Origin: Ylistrum balloti
Taxonomy: Eukaryota
Direction of reading: 5' to 3'
Length of the DNA stretch: 64,000 bases
Assembly (NCBI RefSeq): GCF_031769215.1
Contig: NW_026782563.1
Coordinates: 310,001-374,000 of the forward strand
A program made the position numbers and the translations under genes. Shown here one piece after another: positions 7 through 18,200 of the stretch; positions within the stretch are counted from its first letter, which is position 1; every line of letters begins with the position of its first letter. The notes beneath the pieces are model-generated. The model worked only from the letters and a program-made list of their open reading frames with translations. It was not told the origin of the DNA and ran no database searches.

Positions 7-3000
7 CTTTTATTTTTCTGTACCTCTTTCTTCAGAAAGCTCTTCTCTAATGCCGAGAACGATAACCTGCCACGTAAAATATAAACAAATATAGTTGTAT
101 CTGGAGTACCTGGGTAAAATAGATGTTGTACTGGTGTAAGAGTCCAATACATTCAGGTGTTAATGCAATGTGTAAATGCACTAGATCATATATATCTAGG
201 GTTAGGTTATACTATGATCAGATTAAAAGGACATTGATCATACCCATACAAGGACTGTATTATAGCAAATTAAGGCAACCCACGAGATATCACATGCTGC
301 AAAAACAAACCTCCAGGACAGATCACATATTCAAACATTCACAGAGAAATCAACTGGGTCGTGACACATTTGACCCTACATTTGAATTTTAGAAACTGTC
401 AGCTTCACTTTCTAGACTTTGTGTGACACTTACGTTATCAACAATCAGTTTAATGTAGTATTTGTATAACAAAAAACTGGCAAAATGAAATCTATTTTTA
501 TCTAGATCAAGATTTTTTTTTAACAAACCGTAAACAACAAAATATAGATTTAGTCCAGGGCCGTTTACATTTCTGTTTGACCCAGCTTGTTTGTATTTGA
601 AATAAGGGAAGACCTACTGGTTTTTTTCTTTCTTTCTAACGAACTTCGATTAAGCCTTTTGAGGCCTGTATTATGTCCAGATGCCTGAAATGCTACATTT
701 TAAGTAAGGATGATCTGATTTTTGCTGCATTAAAGAACAGACCCTAGGTAAATGTGAAAACAAAACACTATAATTTACTCACTTTTTACGTGTTTTGAAG
801 CTTGGAATTGGCCCTGTTGAATCCAGACTTGGTTCATTAGTCTTGGTTAGAGAGCCCGTCACATTTCCCCCTATGTTAATAGTACTACTGACATAACTCT
901 TTGTTGACTTTTCTGTTAAAGCTGTGACTTCAGATGTTTTGCTCATGACTGTGGTTGTCTCTGTCAACTTTTCAGTGATAGCAGTAACTGTTGTTAGTTT
1001 GTCAGAAACAGGTATGTCTTTGGATATTATATCTGCAACAGCAGGCTTTTCTATCTGTTCTGACAGCATTGTATTATTCCTGGATTTTTCTGTACTTTTT
1101 GTTTTAAACTGAATTTCTTCATCAGAAGACATTTCCTGGTTTTCCAGACTATCATTGCTTGGACCTTTGACCTCCTGGTCAAATAATGTTTGACTGTCTG
1201 GTCTACACAAGGATTCTGTGTTGACACAGCTATCAAGCATCTTGTTTGTAGGTGTGTCGCCTTCTCCATCAGAAGACTCTGTGAAAGAAAATAAAATCAA
1301 ATTAAATCCAATCATAACCTAAATACTATAAGACAGGTACATGTCTGAAACTAACTTACCGAATATCATAAGTTTTCAGAATTTCAGCATTAAGTACGAG
1401 TGAAATTTTAATTGCTTTATACTTGACAAGAAATTCCTGCAATGACATACCAATTGAAATATTACGGTATTCAAATTTAGAAGACTAGAAAAACGTTCTG
1501 AGTGGACATCTACATATTCACATGAAAACACATGTGAAACTTCCTCAGCATCTTACAGCAGGTTTTGAGAAAAATAAAACCAACAAAAAAATGCTGAACT
1601 AAATGGCAGAGACAAAACAATGCAACAAAAGTTATTAGTCCTGTAATAACAATTTATCAAAAATGATTATCGTCAAAACCATCACAAATACTTTCAAAGA
1701 ATTAACAGCCTCACTGTTATTTTACATATTTCAGTTGATAAAAAACTGATACTGAGATCCACTACACTGTCATTCAAAAGAAAATCTCCATACAAAAGAG
1801 TTTCACATTTCATGTAAAAAAGCAGTTTTACAAACTCATTCAATTTGAAATCTTTTCCTTATTTCATTGAATGGAAGAGATTTACAGCTTTCCTTACCAC
1901 AGGTAGGTGTAGCTAGACTGGCAGCTGAAGGAGTGCTGTTTGTCTTGTAAATGGATTCACTACTGCAATGAATCAATTAACTAATAAATCTATTGCTGAA
2001 GATAAGACAGATTTCTGGAATCGATTCACAGAGGAAAACTGATATTGTCATCATCATCAACCACAAAATTTATAAAAGCAGGCAGGCATTGCTGTATGAC
2101 TATATGGATGGTTTCATACTTGTGCTAGTACTAAACCGATATCTGACCCAACAAAAATGTTTTCATATTAAAAGACAAAAAATTCAATTAATCAAGAACC
2201 GAAAAACGGTTTACATGTGCACAAAAATTATAAACTGTGATACTCAATCGCTTAAGAATATTAAAAATAAACATGTTTAAGAATATCAACTTCATTAAGT
2301 CTTTATATTGAATTTGCCAAACTACAATTAGGTTTTATAATGCATTACTTGGATGAAGAAGATGGAAAATAAGTTTTACCTGTTGTAAGAGACTTGATCA
2401 TCTGACACAGTTGAAGGTATCTACAAAGATAATATGTAGGAAAATGAGACTAATACTGTTATATGCTGTCAGATATATTTGTACATGACAAATAAAACTG
2501 TGCACAAGACAGTAAAAAACATCCGTGAAAGGGAAAAAATCACAATATCAATTAGGGCTGTAACGAGTACCCGGGTCACGCTGTTTCAATCCTGACCCAG
2601 GCTGGAAAATGTGTGCCTGGTTACCCAAGTTAGTATTACATAGTACCATGGTAAAGTTCAATATAAAATGCTTTCAAGTACCTCTGTACTCTTGTAGGCT
2701 GTCTGTTGATACGAAACAATGTTTAATATGCATGTAAACATATATTTCTACTGTATGAATTGCTACATTATTGCAATGTAAGTTGACACTTCCTTCAGGC
2801 CGAGAAATGCACAACAGACTTGACCTGACACTCGGAATTCCTTGGTCATGTGCACAAACTAACCATCGTCAGTTTAACAATAAGGCTTCCCTGATCGAAG
2901 TGTATGATAATTGTAACTCTACAAAGTCTGAAAACACATTGTAGTAGTCATTTTCTTGATATAGTCGATAATATCCGGACTACCATGTTAAGTCTAAATC

Positions 3001-6000
3001 ATGTTAGTTAGCCAAAAATACTTGAAAAATCAGCGTTTATCACTAGTGCCATACTTTCTTGAAGTTGTGGTGATCATGTTACGTAAAGGAGTAGATGCAT
3101 TAAGGGTCAATTTTGGCCCCAGCATAGATTTTCTTAATTTTTATATCATGCAAACATGGACATATGACTTTCTTGAAGTTGTGGTGATCATGATAAAAAA
3201 ACAAGATTTTCTTAATTTTTATATCATGCAAACATGGACATATGACATTGATAAAAAAACAAGACAATTCGTTGCCTAGCAACGGGCCTGGAAACCAACC
3301 TACTCTTTACCGTCTATTTGCACATTTTAGTGATATTTCACTGTTTTTTTTTTATTATTTGGTGAAAATATTTAATCAATTTTTACATATCAATGGTATG
3401 ATTTAAAAATCATATCATATTTGTGATCAACCATCATATATTACATGTTTAAGATTTCCTAGCAACACAATAGCAACCAAACTCTCTCCATAGCAACGGA
3501 TTGTAATAAATACAATAATGGACACAGAAAATTGATGATAATACTCAAGGGCTGTTTAGATTATGATACATCTTAAAAATGTAAATATGATGATACAATA
3601 GAGCATATAGGTGGTATTCCACAGTAACCATGTCTTACCATAGCAACTAAATCTTTCACCATAGCAACGGTACATGCAATAATCAGTACATCAATTTGTC
3701 AATACTTCCGTACACGGTTATCTTTATATTCTTGGTTAATTTGAAAAGGATATGAAATCAAACATGTTACAGTTAATGATTCTTACAAAAGTTAAAAGTT
3801 ATTTCAAATAAACATTATGCACTAACAAAATACATTGTCATTCGAGATTAAAGCCAATTCCTCAGTCGATCAAGTGACCATCGTGCATTTGTATTTACAT
3901 TTTTGGAGATTCCGAAATTTATATGTAATTTACATGGCTACATCGGTAAAGCTGTGCTGTTTTATTCCTCCGTGTTACCTTCATCATCACTCTCATCAAT
4001 ACTGATTGGGTCTGGTGTATAACTGGCATCTTGTAAATATTGTGTCCAGTCCTTACTAAAGTCAAAGGACTTGTCTAAATGACGTGCAAATCCCATATAC
4101 CATAAGATGGATGCAACATGGGAGCAAGTCCCAACCACCCTCGCCCCAGCACGGCATGTACAGTACCATCCTTGCACATTACAATCATCAAATGATACCC
4201 ACAATTGGTAAAGTTTTGAGGAAAAATGTCGGCTCTGTATCTTGGCATTGATCAGATTAGCATCTACTTTACAGATAGATACTTCATATCCTCCCGTTTC
4301 GCTCATATGTTCCTGTGTGTAGGACCGTGCCAGTTTGAGCTGATACACTCCCAGTGTCAAATTCCGCAGGTCTTCTTCTGTCAGAACAGGAAATATGATA
4401 TCAGTTGTGGTCTCCATCTTCTGCCACTTACTAGGTCGATTGAAAAGGCCTTCTCGTTCAATTCTCTCCCAAAGAGAATTCTGCTTCCGTGACAAATGCA
4501 ACATTTTCGATCCTAGCAGTTGATCTTGCTCTGCATCCCCCGTGCTTATTGGTGTACCGAACTTGTTGAAGATTGCACACACAATCCTGACAATATCGCC
4601 TATGTATGGAATCTGTGAGTTTGGCAACACACGATCCAAATATTTCCAGGTTTTTAACCGTCCATTCACAGCCTCAACGACCCATCTGAAAAATAGTAAA
4701 TAGATGCATTTTGAATGTGAATAAATGCAGTATTCAAATGCATATGATGGTAACTATATCAAATAAATTTTGTTTTCAATTTCGACATCTTCTAAATGGA
4801 CAGGTTTATGCAGTTCAACTTATAAAATCGAAAGTATCTAATTCTCACTGGGAATTACCTTTAACCATTTTAATGATATATTAATACAAATAAGTTATAA
4901 ATATGTTGTAAAAGCAATTGGTAAAGTTAGTAAAATGTTACTCAGAACAAAGAGAGACCTTACCTTATTTTAGTAACAAGCCTGGAAGCGTTGCTTTCTC
5001 CGGTAGTGTGCTGTTTCCTTTGCTTGGAAAAAGAAGGCATCTCTGTTTGTATTCCTAGCTGTTGTAGGAGGTCCATGGAATCTCTAAAGCCTCTGTCAAC
5101 CACAAACACATCATTTTCCTGAATCCACTCCTTGATTTCTTGAATGTTGGAATTTAAAATCTGATTCAGGATGCTGGCATCATTGTTTTTGGAATCGGCA
5201 AAATAGGGACCTAACACGGACACTATGTAACCTGTTGTGGTGACAAACATCATAGGTTTTACCAACGGCCGGTGCTTATGCATGCTGTAACTCCTCCTTT
5301 GGAACATAAATTGGCCACTCTTTTGTATATAAATGTAGGTGCCATCAATTACAAGAATGGCTGGTTCCATAAGTCCTCCAAACAATGTTTGGGCGAGTGG
5401 TCTTGTGTGTTTCAGTATAACATCTTGTCGACTAACATGCTGAAATCCCAAATTTGATGGAACAAAGTCTTTCGCTAGTGCAACTCTTGCCGATGTTACT
5501 GCACGTCGAATAGAATCTTTTCCAATGTTAAAAACTGTTGATAGGACTTTATTTGACATGCCACTTTTTAGTTTAGTAAGAAAGATGCCGACACAAGATT
5601 TAATGCTCCTATTCTTTGAAGATCGCACAGAACCAGCACAGTGAGTACACAAATCGTTAAAATGCTGTGTACATAGTCCAGTTAGTGTAATGAAATCTTC
5701 ATTCGAAAGGGCATGCGGTGAGTCAAAGTCAATGCGTTTGCTTTGCTGTGTATTTGCTACATCTCTAATCTTAGAAATCAATGCCACTATTTCAGTACGA
5801 TTAAGAGAAGATAGGTCACTTTTTATAGCAATGTTTTCACAAGCATCATTTTGCAATAGACCATCCTCGATATGATGACTACAACATCTTGCTCCGAACG
5901 GAACTAAAACCCCTTTTCGCAGGAAGAGGTCGTATTTCGCGTCACGAGATATTACCACCAGTTTCTTTGGGTAAGTATTGCATACAAAACATTTTTTGTG

Positions 6001-9000
6001 GCTACTTCCAGTGGATGGGATTGAAAGTGTAATATTCCGCGGCGATGAAAGGATGTTCTTTGTTGATTTATTACAAGGGGCTTCAACTGAAGAGTGGTGT
6101 TGAGCGATGTGTGTACGACGCTGTAGTATTGAGCGATGACATGACATACGACACTTTCCACAAATGACATCTTCTTCTTTTGTTTGTATCATATATGTTT
6201 TCAACAAATATTTTCTTAGTGAAGAGTTTTCCTTGCCTTTAGTGAAGCGCCTGTCCCCAGGTTTTGTTCTCTTAGAACAAACAACACACCGAAATTCTCC
6301 CTTTCCAGGCATCCTAAACAAATAGATACTAACTATATTAAAATATGTCCCAAACATCAGAAACTAAAGGGCGTCTGGGCATTTACTTATTGTATGTTGA
6401 ATAAATATGAAACATTGTATCCATCACTTGTTGTTTATACAGTGTATCATGCAATACTGATCTTCATAATGTTATTACAATGATTTATCAAACATGTAAA
6501 TTGATGTGTTAACAGGGACCCGAGTCAGATATGAGCATTGCTTTGACTGGGTGTTAAATATTTGTATTACTTTACTAGAAGTCAATAATTGCTTTATTAT
6601 ACAGTATATACTGTATGAAATAATAAAATAATAGCTATTTTAGAAGCTGGTAGCTGGACTCATATGAAGTAATCGAAAATGTTTATCATTGTTCTTCATA
6701 AATAGCCAACAAGGAAAGACTGGACAAACAATTGGTGGGAGACAGACAGTGACAATTACATTAAACACATGTATAATAGAAAAAAACCTGTTTTTATTAC
6801 AATACATATATCAGTCACCTTTTTAAAAATAAAATATTGTAGTAGAAACGGAAATAAACATGATAATGAGAGAATTCTCCTCCAAGTATTTCAGATTTCT
6901 GTTACTTAACAATTTGAAGCATAGAAATAAGATTAATTCAGGAACTTCCTAAAACACTTACATGTAACTTCAAGAATCTCCAGGCATTTTCTCGCTACTC
7001 TCTGTCTCCTATTACGTCACTAGTAAACCTTAAAGAATGAAAATAATGAAAATAAATAATCTATTAATTCTTAAGTTCGGTGAAAAATCTGATTTTTACA
7101 AAACTTTATTTTAAAGAGTAGCTAATGTATATTATGCCAGTGTCAATCTGTTTTAAAAAAATATATATCAAGCCAGTGTTTCGTATGTTTCCCGTAATTT
7201 GTTTTTGGTAACAGTACATGTAGCATTGATACTGGCTATACAGTATATCTGGAGCATATAATCACGTTTATATATACATGTAAGCATGTACATGTATATA
7301 CTTCATTTAGTTATTCAGGGATGTGCCATTATAACAAGAGTTCTCCCGAAATATACAAGCCAATAAACTAACTGCAGCCAAAAATGAAGCTAGGTCAAAA
7401 ATATCAAATAGCCACAATATAATAATGTTCGATTCATTGTGCTGACGAAACTTACAAAGCAGAAGACTTACGTTTAATTTCTGAATCAAATGTATCCATA
7501 AAAATATTTGAATTCAGGTCCTCAGGATCGTTATGTTACTGGGATTCTTCAAAAGAAAATATGCATGGTAAGATTTTTCATCGTATTAATTTTATAATAG
7601 CATAAATGAGAGAAATTATACCTTAGCCCATAAGATTAACACTTTAGTTTCTGCACGTATATGCTGATTATTTGATGCTAGCAAAAGTAAGTCCGACGCA
7701 AAACATATATATAGAAAAAAAACTACCCCTGGTCGATAACAATTCAGCAAAATGACGCGATGTAAGAGTTACAATATCTCCAAAAGAAATATTTGTAACA
7801 CCAAGACTATCGATGCAAATATAATTGTTTGTATTAGAATGCAAGGATATTTATATGGAAAAATACATGTAGCAACATGATATAACGTCCTGAAAATATT
7901 CTAATATTTATAATTATTAATTCTATCAGTACATTATTGATGAATATAACTAATAAAATCGAGAATAATTGAGGTGAAAGTTATAGAAAAAAAATAAGAA
8001 TAAAGAATAATATGTTGTGTGCCCGCGATTTGAACTCGCCCCGGCAAAACTACACCTTCAGAGCATCGCACCTTCACCATTACACTACAGCGGCTGATTA
8101 CGTCACAGAGATGATTTTGTTAGTAATATAAATCAAAACCAACACACTTCGGATGTACACTGATTTTATTATGGGTGTGTGAATTGACACTTTAGTTTAT
8201 ATCTCGTATATAGGAACACTTTCTCATTTTTATATGTTAGTGTATGTTTTGAAAACAACACTGTAGCAAATACAGTTTTGCCATTATGTTTTTTCTGACG
8301 ATAAATCCCTGCATTTTGTTTGGTTGCAAAATTCTATTTTTAGACGCAGACTCAGACAACGTTATTATGGAAAATACCGTTTACTAACAAAAAAAGAAAA
8401 GGTTTTATTTTATTTTTTATACTTGTTATTGTATTTTTACTTACTGCATACTTATCAAAACACTAGGAATATCTACAATGACTATTTTTTCGAAGTCAGA
8501 TCTGACGTCTGCTCATATGCACAAACGTAAACAAATCACGACAATGTCGCGAATACACAACATGGATATCTTCTACATAATATTGTTACATACCTGTTAA
8601 AGAAGTAGACAACTTCTACAAGATGTGCAGATGTGTTGACAGCTCTTCTACGTATACATACTTCAAATGTAGGCTGAAACTTGCAAGATCTTCTATGCGA
8701 GTTTAGACTAACGTACAATGTAGCGCATGAGACTCGGGCCTAGGAGATTGCAAAATCTAGGAGTTGTTACCATGGATATTTTTGTCATTTTTCAAAATAC
8801 ATTTTTTTTCATTATTATTATCTAATTTTATTAACAAACATAAGTCAAGTCATTTTTCATGTTTTTGTCTTTTATTTCAGCATCCATTTACTTCCGCAAT
8901 CTTGTAGTCGGTCTCGACGCTAACGTTACGCTGGGCAACGTCAAAATCTCACCAAAATCGTGAAATGTGGTTACAAATTCAGAAGATATTTGTTATTTTA

Positions 9001-12000
9001 AATACCTCCCCAGGCATGTACCAAAAAAATATTTGAGCATCGCAAACATAATGTGGAAATTGTTCTCAATGATAAATATAAAATTGGTACACCCTTGGGG
9101 AGGTAGTTAATTTTTCGTTCAAAGTCATAAAATATCGAAAAAAATCGTGACTTTTTGTAAACGTGACGTTTTCCCGCGAAATTTGTGACGTCATCACACG
9201 CGTTATGAACCTATCTTTATCTGCATTTCAACTGATAAGTTGTTAAATAACACAAATGGGTACATGATTAAAGAATTTTCTAACAATTAAAAAAAAGATT
9301 TTTTGAGGCCAATTTTGAGCCAAAGTGCATCTACTCCTTTGTGGGTAACTGGGTACAGGTCAGGTTTCAATGATCGAGTACACAGGGCAAACACTGTGTA
9401 CCTAAGACACCCTAATATCAATGGGATTATTTAAACTTAAACATCACTGCTTAAGAAAACCTTTTAATATATAAGATTTCCAAAAAGAATAATGATAAAA
9501 AGAAAGTCAATCAAAAGTACAAGGTTATCTTTTTTAAAATTAAACAATTCATTATTGTCTGAGTTGTGGTATAATGATGAAAAGACAGGTTAAAAACTTA
9601 TGTGTGATATTCAAATAATCCAAATTGCAAGATTTTGATTCTCAAACAGATTTAAGAAGAGGCAGCTTTACCTGTTTGATCATGTGATTTTTCTTCATTT
9701 TCTTTAAGTTTCCACTCACACTAAGACCCATTGCACATTACCATTTAGACTAACAAGTGATTTGTGGAACTTATTAAATAGTTCATACTACAAATTCAGA
9801 GAAAACTTACACAGCTATCAGGATGGGCTGAGTTCTCCATGGCAACATCAGTGCTATCTAATCCTACACTTATACGACTCTTAGACATAAACATACTCTC
9901 CGCATCTGAAAACAAAGAAAGACAAAATATTCCACAAACCTGACACCAACAGTCTGACATCAATAAATGATAACTGACAATTTTTTTTCTAAATAACTTG
10001 ATACCATTTGGTACATATATCCTACAAATGCAAAGATATCAGTTTTGTTTTCATTTCTACCTAATATCATTGTCTCTATATGTCGGTATGATAAACTTGG
10101 ATTCTTTTACACAAATTTAGTTACTGAAAGATAATTTCTGTAACCTGGAAATAATCAACCAGCTCTACCAACTGAGCCAAAGAATATAGCTCTAACAGCT
10201 GAGTAACCAAGACTGTAATTAACACTATATAAAAGCCACACCAACCCCCTCCTTTTACATTGCGAATCTTCTTTCAAAAACTCTAATTGACCAATTATTC
10301 AGTTTCTTGATAAGAATACATAGATAACATAATTGTCTTTGTTGAATAATTCAATGATCATTTTGAATATGTGCTTTTTCAGTTCAAAATGAACTTAAAT
10401 TTAGTATACTTCAAACAAAAAAGCATATAATGAATTAGAAATTGTTATATGAATGTACTGGCTATATAATACTTGTGTTTTCTGTCTAAAGATACAAAAT
10501 ATGTTACATTCTAAACAATTGGTTTCTCTCTTTAATGGTATATCCAACACAAGATCTACAGTTTTATCTGTTATTATCTTTACTGAGGAAACTGTGAAAT
10601 TACTGCTACACAAATTACTACAAAATCTTAAAGAGAGTTCATGTATTATTCTTAACATTTATACTTCAAACACAAAAAAAAAGGAGAGAGAAAAAAAAGA
10701 GATACTGACCTGAGGATTCTGAGAAGTAATCTTCAATGTTATCAAAGCCATGACTGTTTTTAGTGATCACCTTCCCTGCTAGAACATCCTTCCCTGTCCT
10801 CCTGTTGATAAGATAGCAATGTTAGTGCATGTACCAGGAAGTCTCATTAATATTCCAGGAACCACATAAGTATTTAATCTCTCTATCAAAGACTGTTATA
10901 TTTTTTGTTACACATGTAGGTAAAGCCAATAAGTCTGTATTGAAATTTTTATACAACTGTACATACCTTCCAATGTTTTTGTTCTTGAGCCATGCAAACA
11001 TATTGGAGGACTGACTTGATCCAAGTTGCTGAGTGAGAAAGAAATATGTGACATTTGTGCTTGATGAAAACTTTTTCATGAGAGGTCAGTCTTTGTCATC
11101 TTATTTCATTTTTTTGGACAGTTTTGGAAATTCTTAAAGTTATGGATGAGATATAGTGCATCAAGACATTAAAATACTTTTTAGAGAGTAGGATTTCCAT
11201 AGGTTCTACAAATGTTTGTATTAAAGCAAATGAATCAAAGGAAAGAAAGTAATTAAAACTGTGTTGACAAATTAGAGTAAATTATCAATGAAATGTATAC
11301 CTCTTCATAATCTTAATCATGTAAACTACTTTCAGCTACAAACAAATAAATTCAGGAAGTAAATGATTCTTTCCATAACTATATATTTAAGTCTGTGATC
11401 ATGTAAAAAAGTAAACATTCACTTTAATAGTTTTATATATCTGTATCCAGAAAAAAAAACTTTATACAATAAGGTATTTGATGTCAATGTGTATACATGC
11501 TTTAATACCTGGTATTACTGGGTAATATGCCTATCACTTTGGCAAGATTTTTCTTTTGTTTATTTTGTTTAACAAGGAGCTGGATTATAATAATATTGAT
11601 ATTTTGCTCTTATTGCTTGTCTTTATTCCTTATTTTACAACTGACCCCTGACTGGCTTGACTCAAACTTTGTACTCTGAGACTGAGCTTCATTTTCTGGA
11701 TCTTTGTTCTCATCGATAGACTTATACTTAAACTCCTTAGAACTTCTGGTCATCCGAGAATTATTAACTGTCAAATCTTGTGTGAAATCTGCATCTGCAA
11801 GATGAACAAACCTAATCTAAGCATTTCTATCTAATACAGTACATTATTATATCAATCATCAAATAGTCTGAAATTCTACATAAATATTCAGATGAAGAAA
11901 TACATCTTCAAGTAATTTTAAGTAGTAATGAGCCAATAGAAAATAATTGCAGTATTAAGTGTTGTTTAATTATTGAAATTGATCATCAGTTAAAATCAGA

Positions 12001-14525
12001 TATGCTTCCTGATGTAATTAATTACATTATCAACTGATTGTGTGTTCAATATTCATAGAAAGTGAATGCATTCTCCACTGCAGTGATATTTTCTTTTTTT
12101 TTGTGACTTAAGCTGAAATAACTCTCTTAACTAAAATTTGCATAAGGATAATTATTATTGTCAATTAGCATCTTTATGCTGCATTACATGAAGTTTGTTC
12201 TTGCTAAAACACAAGAAAATATAAATATCATGGTACTTATGATTGATTATCAGGTATGAAAAATTACAATCAATCATTGCCTCCGATGAGGTTAAATAAT
12301 TAGATATTCAATTAAATTTGACCACTGTCCCATCACTAATACCCATGTCATGAAGCACTGAGTATTGAAGCAAGAATATGTGTTTACATGTCACAATGTT
12401 CAACTTTTGAAATAGTAATTCAAACATCTTTGTTTGAACTAACATTTTTCGCTTCATGTATAGATCTTTAACAAGACTTTAATTTACAGTCAAGTGTGAT
12501 TTAGTTTTGTCTTGTTATGGTTAATGAATTATTGATGAAATCCTAATGATCATTTCTAATGGAGTGAAATAGACTGAATTACTGCAAAATGATAGTCAAT
12601 CTCCAACTGAGTGTTCAACCTATAACAATTTGCCACTTATACCTGATTCTGAATAGTAATCCTCCAGATTTTCAACTCCTTGCTCATTAACTCTGATAAT
12701 TTTTCCTGCAAGAAGGTCTTTTCCTGTTCGCCTACAAGGAACACAAAGTAAAACAGAAAAAATTACAGCAGAAAACCAATAACTGTTGTACCTGGCCAGT
12801 CATGATCAGAAGCTACAACTGCTCAAGGTAACCATGCAGTTAAGACAGGACTTCTGTAGAATTTTATGAAAGAAATTTACTCTTAAGAATGTTAACTTTG
12901 ACAACTCATAATGCACCTAAAATCAAACACTTGCATGTCATATTTCTTTTTCAATTCTCCTTGATTCAATTGATTCTTGATACAGCTTACTAACACTAAC
13001 AACTGACATTTCATCATATCTATGGGTATGACAAGAGGATTAATACATATCTGTATGCATTTCACAACATTTTTGTAATCTGTACATACCATCCTATATT
13101 TTTGTTCTTCAGTGGATTGACAAAGAAATCTTTCTTCTTCTTCTGAAAAATAATTTTCAACTGAATTAAGAGAACAATATGTACAACATTTTTTGAAATA
13201 CATTTATTTTTTGAAAATATTACAATCAATTCAATTTATCTTAAGGAGGTACTGCAATGAAGTAAAATAAGGTTGATACAGACAGGGGAGAAATTCAGTA
13301 AAATATTATTTCAAAAATTTCTCCTATATGTATCATGACAAGGGCAGTTTTCTTTGTATTAAACAGAACAGAATACCTACCTTAGGCACATTACAATTAG
13401 AAAAAAAATGCATGAAAACCATGTATCTTTTATATATAGACTCTGGTCTATTTTACACAAAATCCTATTTGTAGTGTGTCTCTTTGCCTTTGATGACAGG
13501 ACTTTTTCTGCGGGCACCGTGGGGGTGGATATGGGCTCAATCCCCAAATGTATTTATCTCATATGGTTAAATTTCTCAAATATATAAGATATCATAAGAT
13601 GTGTCATCTCCAGTTCAGGACTTATATATATGCAAGTCCTGTATACCAGACTCAAAAATACATTTTAGATATTACAATTATTATGCATAGTCCTCTTGCA
13701 AATATACATTAATTACACAATTTGATAAGTATGTGATTGCAATTCTGTAAGTAAAGGAGATTTTCCATTGTTTGTCTAATTGATTTTAAAATTTGGTTAT
13801 ATTATTTGCTGAAATGACATGTTCATGGTATTTATTCCCAAATGGTTGTTGATTAAACTGAAGACGAGTGGGAGACAATCCTAGGTAGAAAAACCAAAAA
13901 TAATGAGTTTAGGACTCCATGTATGCAGCTTACAGTGAAAACATATCCCAAGACATTCATATTGATTATTGATGCAACATCACCAGTGCTTTGGACAAAT
14001 CCAATACTAACAGACTGAAATTCAATGAATAAATTGTGAGCAATCTGTAAACCTGGGCCCGTATTCATGAAACCGTTCTCATGCTTAAGCATGAATTTTG
14101 TGCTCAAGCCTTATGTCTTGTTAAAGTTAAAAATTGATAAATAAGACTGATTTTGCCAAAGATTTAAAATAAATTTTGAAGGGACTTCAAATCAAAGTTT
14201 AATTCAATGTTTATATTTGACATTTGTATTATTTTATATGATTTAGGCGAATTATGAAAAAGTCTGCTTGAGCACAAAATCTATGCTTGAGCATGAGAAC
14301 GGTTTCATGAATACGGGCCCTGGTTTCTCGCGATTTCAATTTATTTCGTAAACTTTGGTCTGTTATAAATGTCGTCAGAAAAATATTCTCAGATGTTGAC
14401 AACTTGACATAACAATATCCCACATTTTCGAATCGACGAGAGTTTCCGAAATAAATGCATGAATCAGGAACATTTCTAGTTAAAACCAGGAAACAATAAC
14501 ATGAAGATTTTACCGGTTTCCCCAT
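7..14525 (-). CDS. CENPC: Centromere protein C-like (Mif2/Cnp3/CENP-C family), 5' portion; gene continues beyond the left edge
   Basis: Minus-strand exons, joined in frame with GT-AG: 14514-14525 (MGKP), 13090-13142 (KKKKDFFVNPLKNKNIG), 12643-12731 (RTGKDLLAGKIIRVNEQGVENLEDYYSES), 11646-11794, 10967-11028 (QLGSSQSSNMFAWLKNKNIG), 10710-10801 (RTGKDVLAGKVITKNSHGFDNIEDYFSESS), 9811-9905, 2380-2420, 1898-1962, ~783-1278 (S/T/E/K-rich), ~614-684, 7-66. The phase of the 783/684 junction is unresolved. The motif resembles the recalled Cnp3/Mif2 N-terminus (G-R-K-T-G...D-x-x-G-F-E-D-M-D-x-Y-F). The diagnostic CENP-C motif and cupin domain would lie outside the window. Confidence 0.65.
3962..6312 (-). 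CDS. DDE_Tnp_4-type transposase with N-terminal Cys/His clusters, HTH-like region and C-terminal SWIM zinc finger; two exons
   Basis: Exons 4964-6312 and 3962-4685 with a GT-AG intron at 4686-4963 (AG|gtaagg ... tttttcag|A). Splicing restores the conserved ...VTKIR-WVVEAVNGRLK. Catalytic triad candidates: IDGTY, VDRGF, VVEAVN. SWIM motif WYCTCRAGARVVGTCSHVAS. About 690 aa, no internal stops or frameshifts. Confidence 0.9.
8018..8095 (-). pseudogene. tRNA-derived (SINE-head-like) sequence inside the transposon
   Basis: Minus strand gccgctgTAGTGTAATGGtgaagg...ggcgaGTTCAAATCgcgggcaca has A and B boxes at tRNA-like spacing. The T-stem pairs only 3/5, so it is not a functional tRNA. Confidence 0.55.
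10170..10230 (-). mobile_element. Short tRNA-derived SINE head remnant
   Basis: Minus strand TGGCTCAGTTGGTAGAGC is a tRNA A-box/D-arm signature. No B box recognised. Confidence 0.3.
14056..14319. mobile_element. PIF/Harbinger-type MITE, 264 bp, in intron 1 of the CENP-C-like gene
   Basis: ~37-bp near-perfect TIR GGCCCGTATTCATGAAACCGTTCTCATGCTyAAGCAT at both ends. 3-bp TSD CTG (14053-14055, 14320-14322), a CWG type. Confidence 0.85.
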
Positions 14526-15296
14526 AGCTAGAACATGTAGTTGAATCCTCAGAGAATTACACTTGTTTTCGTCTTTTGATTATACCGCCTTTTTCATTTT
14601 GACCCATTTTTCAAATGAACGGAAGTGGCTTTTGTATCAAAATTTTAGAGTTTATTAGTATGTCATTATCCGGAACTGGGACTAAACTGTTTAAAAAAGT
14701 TCGGACTCAAAACGTATACTACGGTATGTTATCTGCATACAAAAGATATGATTTTTACCGCTAAAGCATTGCGAGGTACATCAAATGATTATATTGAAAA
14801 AAAAAGAAATCAAAATAGTTCCGTTTATGGTGACCAATCATATTCGTTGAAAAAGAACTTCCGCGGGAGCATCAAATGCAAGATCTGGCATAGTGGTAAA
14901 TCAACTTCAACGTCAAATGTTTAATGTAATCTTAGGATCTCCATATAAAAGAGCATTTTTGTGATCCAGCAAAGTTGTTTAAATAGTAATATAACCGGAA
15001 TCTACCGGTCAAATCGGGGACTGAGGTTAGTGGTATTTACTGACCATTTGACAGAAAACATTTTACCATGGAGGCACAGTGTTAGACTTCCAAACTTCTG
15101 TAACACACTATGAAAATAGGTCAGTGCAAGAGCAAACGGATCTGTTATAGGTTCCTAATGAGTAAAATATTTCAGAGATTGCTAGGATCTTTACTGCAAC
15201 ATTTCAGGCATATTCTAAATTAGTTTCATTAATCTTAGAAACTTTGGTGATATACTTTCAGAAAAGTCCAGTTATGAACACCTTTAAGACAAAATC
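14526..15296. promoter_or_regulatory. Putative bidirectional promoter between the CENP-C-like gene and HAUS3
   Basis: The divergent ATGs are 771 bp apart. Local CpG enrichment; CHR-like TTTGAA (minus, 14610-14615), ETS-like CGGAAGTG (14620-14627), CCAAT (14834-14838), E2F-like TTCCGCGGGA (~14859-14868). An acceptor at ~15261 implies a HAUS3 5'-UTR exon. Confidence 0.55.
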
Positions 15297-18200
15297 ATGA
15301 GTGGACGACAGTTTGTGGATACACTGATTCAACTTGGCTACCCCAAGGCTGAGAGCCTGGACCCCCAAAGCTTTGAGTGGATGTTTGAGGGGGATGGGGT
15401 AGCGCCATTTCTGGACTGGTTTTGTAATAACGTAGGCAACACCAATGTACTTCATCCCAAAGATATTCAGGAGTAAGTCTGATTTTTGTTCAGGAAATTA
15501 CTAATAAATTACTGTCAGCATGTTCATAAATTTTGTGTAGATTTTAATTTATTTTTTATTGTATTGAAGCTTACATATTTATGTATACATGTGCATTGTA
15601 CTAAATCCAAATTGTTGGTCTCTATATGACATGTTATATATATGTCATATATGTAGGAAAATGAATTGCAACTTATAATCTGTAATTAAGGACATCAAAG
15701 TATGATTCACCAGATGAAAAGAACAAGTGGTCAATGCTTAAAATATTCTTAGTCAAAGTTGGAATGGGTTTAAAGATGTATCATTAGCTTGAAAATGTAC
15801 TGAACAGTTATATCAGGGCAGGATTGTTACCAGATTGATGCAGCATATACTAAGTCTTCATAAAAATGATATATCATTTAGTATTGACAAATTTAGGAAA
15901 GACTTACCATCCACTCTGAAATCTGCATTGATGTGTCACTGAAATTTGATTACTCATGCAGGTATGAGAAGCTTAGAGATTCAGAGGAGGGTATTTTACA
16001 AGGAAGTCAGCTGGAGGAAGCTTTACGATCTGTCACTGTCGGCGAGGAGGATAATCTCACTGATGACCAGCTCAGGTCAGTAACCAGCCATGCCCCAACA
16101 TTTTTATCAAAGTTTATAGAATTAGTACTTTCAACTAATTACATGAAATCAAACTTTAAATGAGTTAAAAGTAAGGACTGGTTAGCCTATTGTCAGTATG
16201 ATGCAGTCCAGATGGGTGTCATTGTGCCCTGTCCTGGTTATTACATTTCAGAGTGATGGACAGTATCGTCATATGAACTTGGCTTTTGTGAAATCCAAAG
16301 CACAAACAATCTACATAAAAAACTGCTTATAAAACTCCTACCAAAGCGAAATGAACCTGAATAGATTGGATATGAATTCAGAAGAGATTCTTGTTTGATC
16401 TGACTTAATCATAAGACTCATAGGGAAGAAATGCATCATTTTATGAGTTTGCACTGCTAAAATGGGTATTGATCAGTGAACACACACTTGATGAAAACTT
16501 GAAAAATGTTTCAAAACGGTTGCTGGTTTTCATTTCTTATTTGGTGAAATTTGGATATGTTACATTAATACTAAAGTATAACACCTTCCCATCCTACTGT
16601 CGTAATTTTGAAATTAATCCCAAATATTTTTTGCCTACCTATAGAAAGGCCATTAATCAGACTGAGCATGACCTTAGGATAAAGAAGAAGAGAAAGCAGG
16701 TTCTAATTCAAAAGAGGAATAAGCTGAGGTGAGTATGATAAAAAAAATTATCATATGTACACCAGCTGCTTATTTAGTACATATGATTTTGAATATTTTT
16801 CCCTTGATTTTTTTAACTGATGCAAACATTTTGTTGATCAAGACGAGACATATATAACACTAAAATGTGTCCACACACAGGAGAGTCCTCATACTTATAC
16901 GTCATCCACATTTTGAATAATATCTAGCCATAGTTGTGTTGAACAGATTCTTCAAATTCATTACAATTTTATCCAGAATTTGAATTAATTACTCTCTAAC
17001 TTTTGCATATTAAAGTTGATATCTATCTATGAAGAGCAAGTAATCATTTATAACCAGTATTTTGCATCATCAGTTTACATCAGACAAGTCTTAGTCATCG
17101 ATTGTCCAAGGTCAAGAGCACAGAGGCCAAAGTCAAATCTCAGTTTAAACACTGTAAGGAGCAATGCCGAACGGACAGCACACAGGTATTTATACTCTTG
17201 AACCTGTCTATAAAAACCATTCAAGGGAGGTGAGAAATGTAATCTTTATATAGTGGCTTCAGTTAATGTGAATTTCATTACATTTGTACTCGGACCAGTA
17301 GCCATTATAAACAGGTAGTTATTGTAATTGTGTGGTCTTAAAGGCAGACTTGGCTGTACTTATTTATACGTAAGTATACTGGTATGTATGTATGTGTTAA
17401 TGGAAGTTTAAGAATATTTCAGAATAGTAGATTTTTTTTATGTAAGTGTCTTTATTTCTAACTTAATGTCATAGATATGTATGGATTTATATACCTTGAA
17501 ACTACAGTCCTTTAAGATGATTGATACTAATATTTCTTATTTTGTAATTTACTGTCACTTGATTGTAATTATATGATTAAAGATATAAAAATACCCAGCA
17601 TCTTAACAAATGAAGTATAATTGAACTTTAAATAATGTACTTCATGTCCAGATGAATGCCAATGTGGAAAACTTGGTCCGGTCTGTTGAGGATCTTCACA
17701 ACCTGTACAAGTCTGACAATGGAAATAACTCGCCCAATTTCCTGTCCCAGATATCACTTGGTGAATATGCAAATGCAGAGGAGAAATTTTCACAGGAACT
17801 GACAGCTTTCACAAAGAAACAGTTCTTTGAGGTATAGAGATAATTGTTCAAAGATACTAGAATATACAGTTGACTTTCTTTGAATGAAGTTGCTGGTATC
17901 TCCTCCCGTACATTACATAATTTAAGATTATATGAAGAAGGATATCTTTCTGGATTATTCAATAAACATTAAACATTCTAACTTATAAAATGGACAGTAA
18001 TATCATAATGGTCTCAAGAATTCCCTAAAAACTCAAAAAATAAGACACAGTGTATGTAAAGCAAATGCACTTAAGTTTATGTAAGAAACTACAGACTTCA
18101 AGATAGGCTTAACTTTGACATCCACTTATTAACAAGTTTTTAAGAGTAATTTTCACAAGGTTCAAGAAAAAGGAGGCAAGTTAGGATTATAATGACAGAA

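Follow-up and report, generated by a model that had tools for sequence, protein, structure and literature searches.

The window analysed here, a stretch of 64,000 nucleotides of Ylistrum balloti (G000:C706:310001-374000), holds on its minus strand the 5' third of a gene that we identify as a predicted CENP-C, and the first coding exons of this gene form two tandem cassettes, each encoding one copy of a candidate Mis12-binding motif. Exons were rebuilt by script from the minus strand of window positions 9600-13400, and positions without a contig handle are those of the window. The coding part of exon 1 (14525-14514, 12 nt, ATG GGG AAA CCG, encoding MGKP, donor GTAAAA, phase 0) was picked in a scan from ATG to donor. 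Cassette 1 (13142-11646, 291 nt) is made up of exon A1 (13142-13090, 53 nt, phase 0>2), which encodes KKKKDFFVNPLKNKNIG(W), the basic first half of motif copy 1; exon B1 (12731-12643, 89 nt, phase 2>1), which supplies the remainder of that copy including the acidic-aromatic ENLEDYYSES; and exon C1 (11794-11646, 149 nt, phase 1>0), a variable linker of about 50-55 residues between the two motifs. Cassette 2 (11028-9811, 249 nt) is made up of exon A2 (11028-10967, 62 nt, phase 0>2), which encodes QLGSSQSSNMFAWLKNKNIG(R), the first half of motif copy 2; exon B2 (10801-10710, 92 nt, phase 2>1), which holds the remainder of copy 2 (RTGKDVLAGKVITKNSHGFDNIEDYFSESS); and exon C2 (9905-9811, 95 nt, phase 1>0), the linker behind motif 2. 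Both cassettes are stop-free, have a length divisible by three and run through the phases 0>2, 2>1 and 1>0, and all six of their exons have a pyrimidine tract with an AG acceptor and a GT donor. A preliminary description of this DNA, made from the letters alone, had recognized the six exons with their splice sites and phases; these hold, as do the peptides it quoted, after two boundaries were shifted by one base each.

Motif copies 1 and 2 share 28 identical residues over 39 aligned positions with one gap, where the preliminary description had counted about 28 of 40. Each copy consists of a basic L-K-N-x-N-I-G-x-R-x-G segment and an acidic-aromatic E-N-[IL]-E-D-Y-[YF]-S-E-S segment, the introns fall at equal motif positions in both cassettes (after I-G and after S-E-S), and the copies lie about 100 residues apart in the protein with a fast-evolving linker between them. 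The cassette pair is a tandem exon-cassette duplication, with adjacent, in-frame, paralogous exons of equal intron positions and phases. When the two halves were compared as DNA, significant similarity was found only at exon A with its donor (84%) and at exon B (66%), and the introns of cassettes 1 and 2 gave no alignment. The proportion of synonymous sites that differ between the copies is saturated (pS 0.77) and that of nonsynonymous sites is low (pN 0.17), which together with the non-alignable introns indicates that the duplication is old and that the coding parts have been kept similar. In a public run, one contig of 4904 bases covers positions 9500-14079 unbroken with 24 single-base differences, and as this one independent contig spans both cassettes, the tandem layout is no assembly artefact and is present in another individual or haplotype. 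The coding differences of this contig in the N-terminal region are M111I (window 10999), which changes the ATG of exon A2 to ATA immediately before the basic part of motif 2, and A179T (window 9828); exons B1 and B2 are without differences.

Behind the cassettes the window holds, all on the minus strand, exon 8 (2420-2380, 41 nt, phase 0>2, IPSTVSDDQVSYNS), homologous to a 41-nt exon in three scallop genes; exon 9 (1962-1898, 65 nt, phase 2>1); exon 10 (1278-783, 496 nt, phase 1>2), which encodes a Ser/Thr/Glu-rich disordered region; and exon 11 (66-7, 60 nt, KLSFSALEKS...). The 40 kb to the left of the window were examined for downstream exons, and the gene extends there to about G000:C706:299689. 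About 17-20 kb downstream of the cassettes, on the same contig and behind large open frames of the minus strand, lie a CENP-C motif-like exon (C706:302487-302666, minus strand), which encodes RRSQRTRVQTLEWYKNERVDY, and three cupin exons (C706:300902-301285, 300259-300414 and 299689-299841, minus strand) with 82-89% identity to the CENP-C of Mizuhopecten. The Mizuhopecten protein is collinear with the contig from position 13142 down to the cupin, with 82-90% identity over the CENP-C-motif and cupin exons, and the motif-like exon is 90% identical to the matching exon of an annotated scallop CENP-C. The CENP-C motif is an Arg-rich element with a Trp that precedes the cupin and binds the CENP-A nucleosome. 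We take the RRSQRTRVQTLEWYKNERVDY exon to resemble the vertebrate form of this motif while deviating from it at the Pro and Tyr-Trp positions; a strict CENP-C-motif pattern found no match at the locus, where the motif would be a variant form.

When proteins were searched exhaustively with the 518-residue exon, three were obtained, with lengths of 1532-1783 residues: the predicted CENP-C of Pecten maximus, Mizuhopecten yessoensis and Argopecten irradians. NCBI misnames two of them. The 404 in-window codons are stop-free and align end to end with these three scallop proteins at 65, 59 and 48% identity (E 1e-106 to 1e-162). The full-length scallop orthologues match Pfam CENP-C_C (PF11699), the C-terminal cupin through which CENP-C dimerises, at 55-61 bits against a cut-off of 29 (58.6 bits for Mizuhopecten). 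One cupin exon of the present gene alone gives partial matches to Cupin_2 and CENP-C_C (16.8 bits), single exons being unable to reach the cut-off, and a genome-wide Pfam CENP-C_C scan gave weak exon-level matches only, none of them at this locus. The N-terminal motif was found at no other locus of the 648-Mb assembly. By these comparisons, and by a HAUS3 neighbour that it has in common with Pecten and Argopecten, the gene is the CENP-C orthologue of a scallop-like bivalve, which bears out the identity that had been proposed before the contig was extended to the left, and we are highly confident that the gene model and the predicted two-motif protein are right.

Whether both cassettes enter one protein can be approached through the gene models of other scallops. 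The models XP_033737551 of Pecten, OWF38971 of Mizuhopecten and XP_069125957 of Argopecten all consist of MGKP followed by cassette 1 and cassette 2, and the full-length scallop models open MGKP-KKKK[DE]FFVNPLKNKNIGW..., with cassette 1 leading directly into cassette 2. Threading these proteins onto their loci in the three genomes gave the 12-nt exon, A1 of 53 nt, B1 of 89 nt (the B1 described here being 86-90% identical to its scallop orthologues), C1 of 134-152 nt and always 2 mod 3, A2 of 62-65 nt, B2 of 92 nt and a C2 that ends in phase 0; behind C2 follow exons of 41 nt, 62-71 nt, about 500-670 nt and 60 nt, to which the window has matching exons. Exon 1 had been picked by the ATG/donor scan before any comparison was made, and it encodes exactly the MGKP of the scallop orthologues. 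A four-codon first coding exon is rarely guessed by gene finders, and this one recurs across separate scallop annotations. It also lies within the sole CpG-rich stretch of the region (14250-15000), which the gene shares head-to-head with HAUS3. Taken together, the models argue that both cassettes are probably joined in one protein in this species.

The possibility that the ATG of exon A2 is the ancestral start was considered and dropped: judging by the annelid sequence and every first copy, it is copy 1 and not copy 2 that has retained the ancestral N-terminal context, and the ATG itself is polymorphic.

Selection on the two motifs was estimated with the pairwise Nei-Gojobori method among four scallops, at a synonymous divergence (dS) of 0.45-1.2. 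The ratio of nonsynonymous to synonymous divergence (dN/dS) is 0.03-0.13 for motif 1 and 0.01-0.11 for motif 2, compared with 0.21-0.37 for linker 1 and 0.10-0.26 for the tail. In mean identity among the four species, motif 1 reaches 90% and motif 2 reaches 93%, and the two linkers about 61-62%; orthologous copies are thus 90-93% identical and paralogous copies about 72%. The preliminary description had suspected selection on both copies from the conservative character of their differences, and the estimates agree, neither motif being near a ratio of 1. These values indicate that both motif copies are under strong purifying selection.

In order to address what the motif is, we built a 56-column profile from 16 copies and searched it against 177,635 solved-structure sequences. 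The top match is the Mif2 chain of 7ON1, at residues 11-46 of 549 and therefore at the extreme N-terminus, where the Mif2 sequence R-K-T-G-I-D-V-K ... E-N-I-D-D-F-F aligns with R-R-T-G-K-D-V ... D-N-I-E-D-Y-F of the profile; the match, though marginal in E-value, agrees with the earlier assignment to the Mis12-binding type. Columns invariant over the 16 copies are G, R, G, G-K, I, G and D-Y. Human CENP-C binds the MIS12 complex (MIS12C) through an extended basic segment at residues 6-22 (Lys10, Tyr13, Arg14-16 and Phe17) and an amphipathic helix at residues 32-44, and this helical element superposes on that of Mif2 (PMC5101189). Both elements described for human CENP-C/MIS12C are recognisable in both scallop copies.

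Among the closest described systems is human CENP-C 1-71 bound to MIS12C (PDB 5LSK; PMC5101189), where a bipartite motif likewise sits at the very start of a CENP-C whose C-terminus is a cupin. The human and scallop motifs are alike in having a basic segment with L-K-N and an Arg cluster, followed after about 15-20 residues by a hydrophobic/acidic segment that ends in an aromatic residue and Glu. They differ in number, since the human protein has one copy and the scallop protein two tandem copies, each on its own three-exon cassette, and the similarity between the human peptide and the scallop motif is too low for a direct search match. In yeast, the best match of our profile corresponds to the N-terminus of Mif2, which binds MIND head I (Dimitrova et al. 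2016, cited through PMC5101189); Mif2 too is unlike the scallop protein in having a single copy. As far as sequence can assign it, the predicted scallop protein opens with two copies of an N-terminal motif of the CENP-C/Mif2 type, both of them constrained.

The duplication is not confined to one species. Relatives were found by a word search with the Argopecten N-terminus and a second search with the annelid motif, a procedure whose reach ends before oysters, clams and cephalopods. The first search returned Mytilus CENP-C proteins over 93% of the two-motif region together with an annelid protein, and the second a gastropod and a spider protein. Two motif copies are present in the scallops, in the gastropod Gigantopelta aegis and in the spider Oedothorax gibbosus; five Mytilus species have three, and the annelid Lamellibrachia and a related run-assembled protein have one. 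At the level of the genome, Gigantopelta opens with an exon of 12 nt, which is followed by two A/B/C cassettes of identical phases, M. trossulus has a 3-nt first exon, three cassettes and a 162-nt phase 0-0 linker exon after cassette 2, and Lamellibrachia has a single unit with an A exon of 47 nt (0>2) and a B exon of 89 nt (2>1). In Oedothorax gibbosus both copies lie within one 396-nt exon and pair at 100/99 support in a tree of 23 motif copies, and the spider duplication is therefore independent. The same tree resolves the orthologous groups as well as the spider pair and makes mussel copies 2 and 3 mutual closest relatives; it gave no deep branching order, and the first duplication is not datable from it. 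A residue signature separates the copies as well, Pro-Leu before K/R-N being found in every first copy and in the annelid and Trp/Tyr-Leu in all downstream copies, whether of scallops, mussels or the gastropod. These comparisons identify the three-exon unit as ancestral in lophotrochozoans and multiplied as a cassette in molluscs. The shared cassette layout and the division between Pro-Leu and Trp/Tyr-Leu suggest one early molluscan duplication, and the cassette duplication probably predates the split between gastropods and bivalves.

Several side observations were made on the public records of these proteins. Most of the predicted CENP-C orthologues are misnamed in NCBI ('nucleoprotein TPR-like', 'serine-rich adhesin for platelets-like', 'dentin sialophosphoprotein-like', 'uncharacterized protein PF3D7_1120600-like' and 'putative uncharacterized protein DDB_G0282133'), and motif surveys based on names will miss such misnamed mollusc proteins. 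The Mizuhopecten record XP_021377249 is without the entire two-motif N-terminus that the older model OWF38971 has. At L020:1-986 and 1001-10873, the CENP-C gene of Oedothorax gibbosus and another gene are arranged head-to-head; the product of the latter, of 832 residues, has CENP-C_C as well, and the pair looks like a local CENP-C gene duplication.

In the systems that have been studied, CENP-C brings one Mis12 complex, and thereby one Ndc80 and one Knl1 complex, to the centromere, and models of kinetochore stoichiometry rest on one Mis12 complex per CENP-C. Human CENP-C is described as recruiting a single MIS12:NDC80 (PMC5241120). For the scallop protein we propose that an ancestral lophotrochozoan CENP-C would have carried its N-terminal Mis12-complex-binding motif on a three-exon unit between phase-0 introns, and that this unit would have been duplicated in tandem and in frame. 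The mRNA would join exon 1 (MGKP), cassette 1, cassette 2 and the remainder, and each copy may then dock one Mis12 complex at its Mis12:Nnf1 head, a functional dock being a peptide that directly binds the Mis12:Nnf1(PMF1) head and the Dsn1:Nsl1 connector. Scallop CENP-C would be bivalent and mussel CENP-C trivalent for the outer kinetochore, with two or three KMN networks per molecule, and the skipping of a phase 0-0 cassette would be frame-neutral and could lower this valency. That both copies really bind the Mis12 complex is, in our estimate, slightly favoured. More tentatively, and leaning somewhat against it ourselves, we offer the wider proposition that the number of Mis12 docks on CENP-C is evolvable and splice-tunable, with two functional docks in molluscs since before the gastropod/bivalve divergence, a third in mussels, isoform valency set by skipping, two docks gained independently in the spider, and a 1:1 rule of human and yeast that would not be general.

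Several results weigh against two constitutive Mis12 docks in one scallop protein. The profile reaches Mif2 with a marginal score (16 bits, E 0.052), and Pfam Mif2_N matches neither motif copy, although the genome-wide Mif2_N scan that also gave no match is uninformative, since it found none in control genomes either; a single-sequence search of solved structures with the two-motif N-terminus gave no match. In bivalve copy 1 the first Arg of G-R-R-T-G, which the annelid and all downstream copies keep, is replaced by Trp or Leu, the segment reading G-W-R-[ST]-G in scallops and G-L-R-S-G in mussels, and as the Arg14-16 cluster of human CENP-C matters for binding, binding by copy 1 may be weaker or directed at another partner. 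The predicted M. trossulus isoform X4 is without exactly cassette 2 and its linker exon (363 nt, 121 residues), which implies that the copies need not always occur together. Finally, searches of indexed sequencing runs with 5.9 kb around the cassettes and with 1.5 kb of the big exon returned one DNA-like run and no RNA, and the inclusion of both cassettes in this species is drawn from the gene models of relatives.

The replacement in copy 1 is the starting point of an account that we regard as unlikely, though it survives better than the other alternatives, in which the functions of the copies are split: both would be in the protein and constrained, only the downstream copy, with the G-R-R-T-G of the single-copy ancestor, would be a high-affinity Mis12C dock, and copy 1 would offer a site that is weak or regulated, act as a competitor or dock another partner. 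The change from Arg to Trp/Leu is common to the copy 1 of scallops and mussels and absent from the annelid, both gastropod copies and the downstream bivalve copies. In the human complex, Arg14-16 contact acidic residues of NSL1, and mutation of those NSL1 residues abolished the binding of CENP-C 1-21 (PMC5101189). The much greater closeness of orthologous than of paralogous copies is also what distinct roles would lead one to expect. Nevertheless, copy 1 has every column that is invariant across the 16 copies, keeps the ancestral position at the extreme N-terminus, and has a dN/dS as low as that of copy 2.

Alternative use of the scallop cassettes, through skipping or through an internal start at the A2 ATG, would leave most CENP-C molecules with one motif and reserve the copies for different tissues or division types, and we consider this improbable. 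The structure would allow it, both cassettes being phase 0-0 and multiples of three and A2 having an in-frame ATG just before the motif, and the mussel predictions supply a precedent in X4 and in isoform X3, which is without the 162-nt linker exon only. The preliminary description had considered one- and two-motif isoforms possible through such skipping, and its structural part is sound, in-frame skipping being possible and predicted in M. trossulus; no cassette-skipping isoform was seen for a scallop, the two Pecten isoforms differing only near the C-terminus. Every full-length scallop, mussel and gastropod model examined has at least two copies, and the 617-bp intron before A2 shows no CpG cluster or other sign of a promoter. 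The A2 acceptor, its phase and the residues upstream of the A2 ATG are conserved in frame among the four scallops, and the ATG reads ATA (M111I) in another individual of the species. The last alternative, a cassette that is a dead relic or an assembly artefact with a frame open by chance, is refuted by the independent contig with both cassettes, the intact splice sites, the same exon lengths and phases in four scallop genomes, and a dN/dS of at most 0.13 for both motifs at the between-species dS given above.

If the proposal of several Mis12 docks per molecule is true, molluscs would provide a natural CENP-C with two or three of them, kept under strong purifying selection in scallops, mussels and a gastropod, and the copy number of the outer kinetochore per CENP-C would be under selection and changeable by simple duplication of an exon cassette. 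The one-, two- and three-motif N-termini could then serve as natural constructs for relating valency to the strength of microtubule attachment, and the mussels would offer a candidate splicing switch. The mollusc CENP-C sequences are already public as automatic predictions, and a full-text literature search found no publication on multiple Mis12-binding motifs in a CENP-C or on mollusc CENP-C. The preliminary description had taken the motif to be normally single-copy; its duplication proves to be shared by scallops, the three-copy mussels and the gastropod. The two-motif CENP-C is a real, ancient and selected variant of a known protein, conserved and apparently unremarked in molluscs and convergent in a spider.

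A partial parallel is found in CENP-T, a disordered inner-kinetochore arm where several short linear motifs per chain raise the copy number of the outer kinetochore (PMC5241120); it is unlike the scallop case in being a different protein with different, Ndc80-binding motifs. We also considered that the CENP-C duplication compensates for a lost CENP-T. This is not supported, as the genome has a CENP-T_C match of 51 bits. It lies in one of two histone-fold exons at G000:C412:990696-991287 (51 bits at 991177-991287, and 18 bits), so that the genome probably has a CENP-T gene. Histone gene arrays on C1354 and C253 make up the other matches of the CENP-T_C search. A Pfam Mis12 scan of the genome gave no usable single-exon gene.

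A second CENP-C-type cupin locus was found at G000:C753:20709-22702 (L010:709-2702), with three exons of 41-83% identity to scallop CENP-C. No CENP-C-like sequence was found in the 20 kb before this cupin, and the locus may be a diverged paralogue or a cupin-only gene.

The neighbour of CENP-C in the window is HAUS3, which encodes augmin subunit 3, with its first coding exon at 15297-15473 on the plus strand (Pfam HAUS-augmin3, E 7.7e-7). HAUS3 and CENP-C are arranged head-to-head, with about 770 bp between this exon and the CENP-C start codon, and HAUS3 is also the neighbour in Pecten maximus and Argopecten irradians; the two genes, one of the spindle and one of the kinetochore, probably share one bidirectional promoter. 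The introns of CENP-C contain several repeats. Intron 1 holds an element resembling a miniature inverted-repeat transposable element (14049-14326), whose terminal inverted repeats of 61 nt show 93% complementarity. In the public run the word depth of this element sums to about 4900-6600, compared with about 10 in the flanks, and it is therefore a member of a very abundant repeat family. The intron behind B2 holds a short repeat, at about 10091-10287, which is covered roughly tenfold more deeply than its flanks and at which several contigs end loosely; a tRNA-like box (GGCTCAGTTGGTAGAGC) lies within this repeat, where ARAGORN finds no tRNA, and the repeat is possibly a short interspersed element. 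The 7.4-kb intron between exon C2 and exon 8 contains a DNA transposon (3962-6357, minus strand) with two long open frames, the second of which has a DDE_Tnp_4 match (27 bits).

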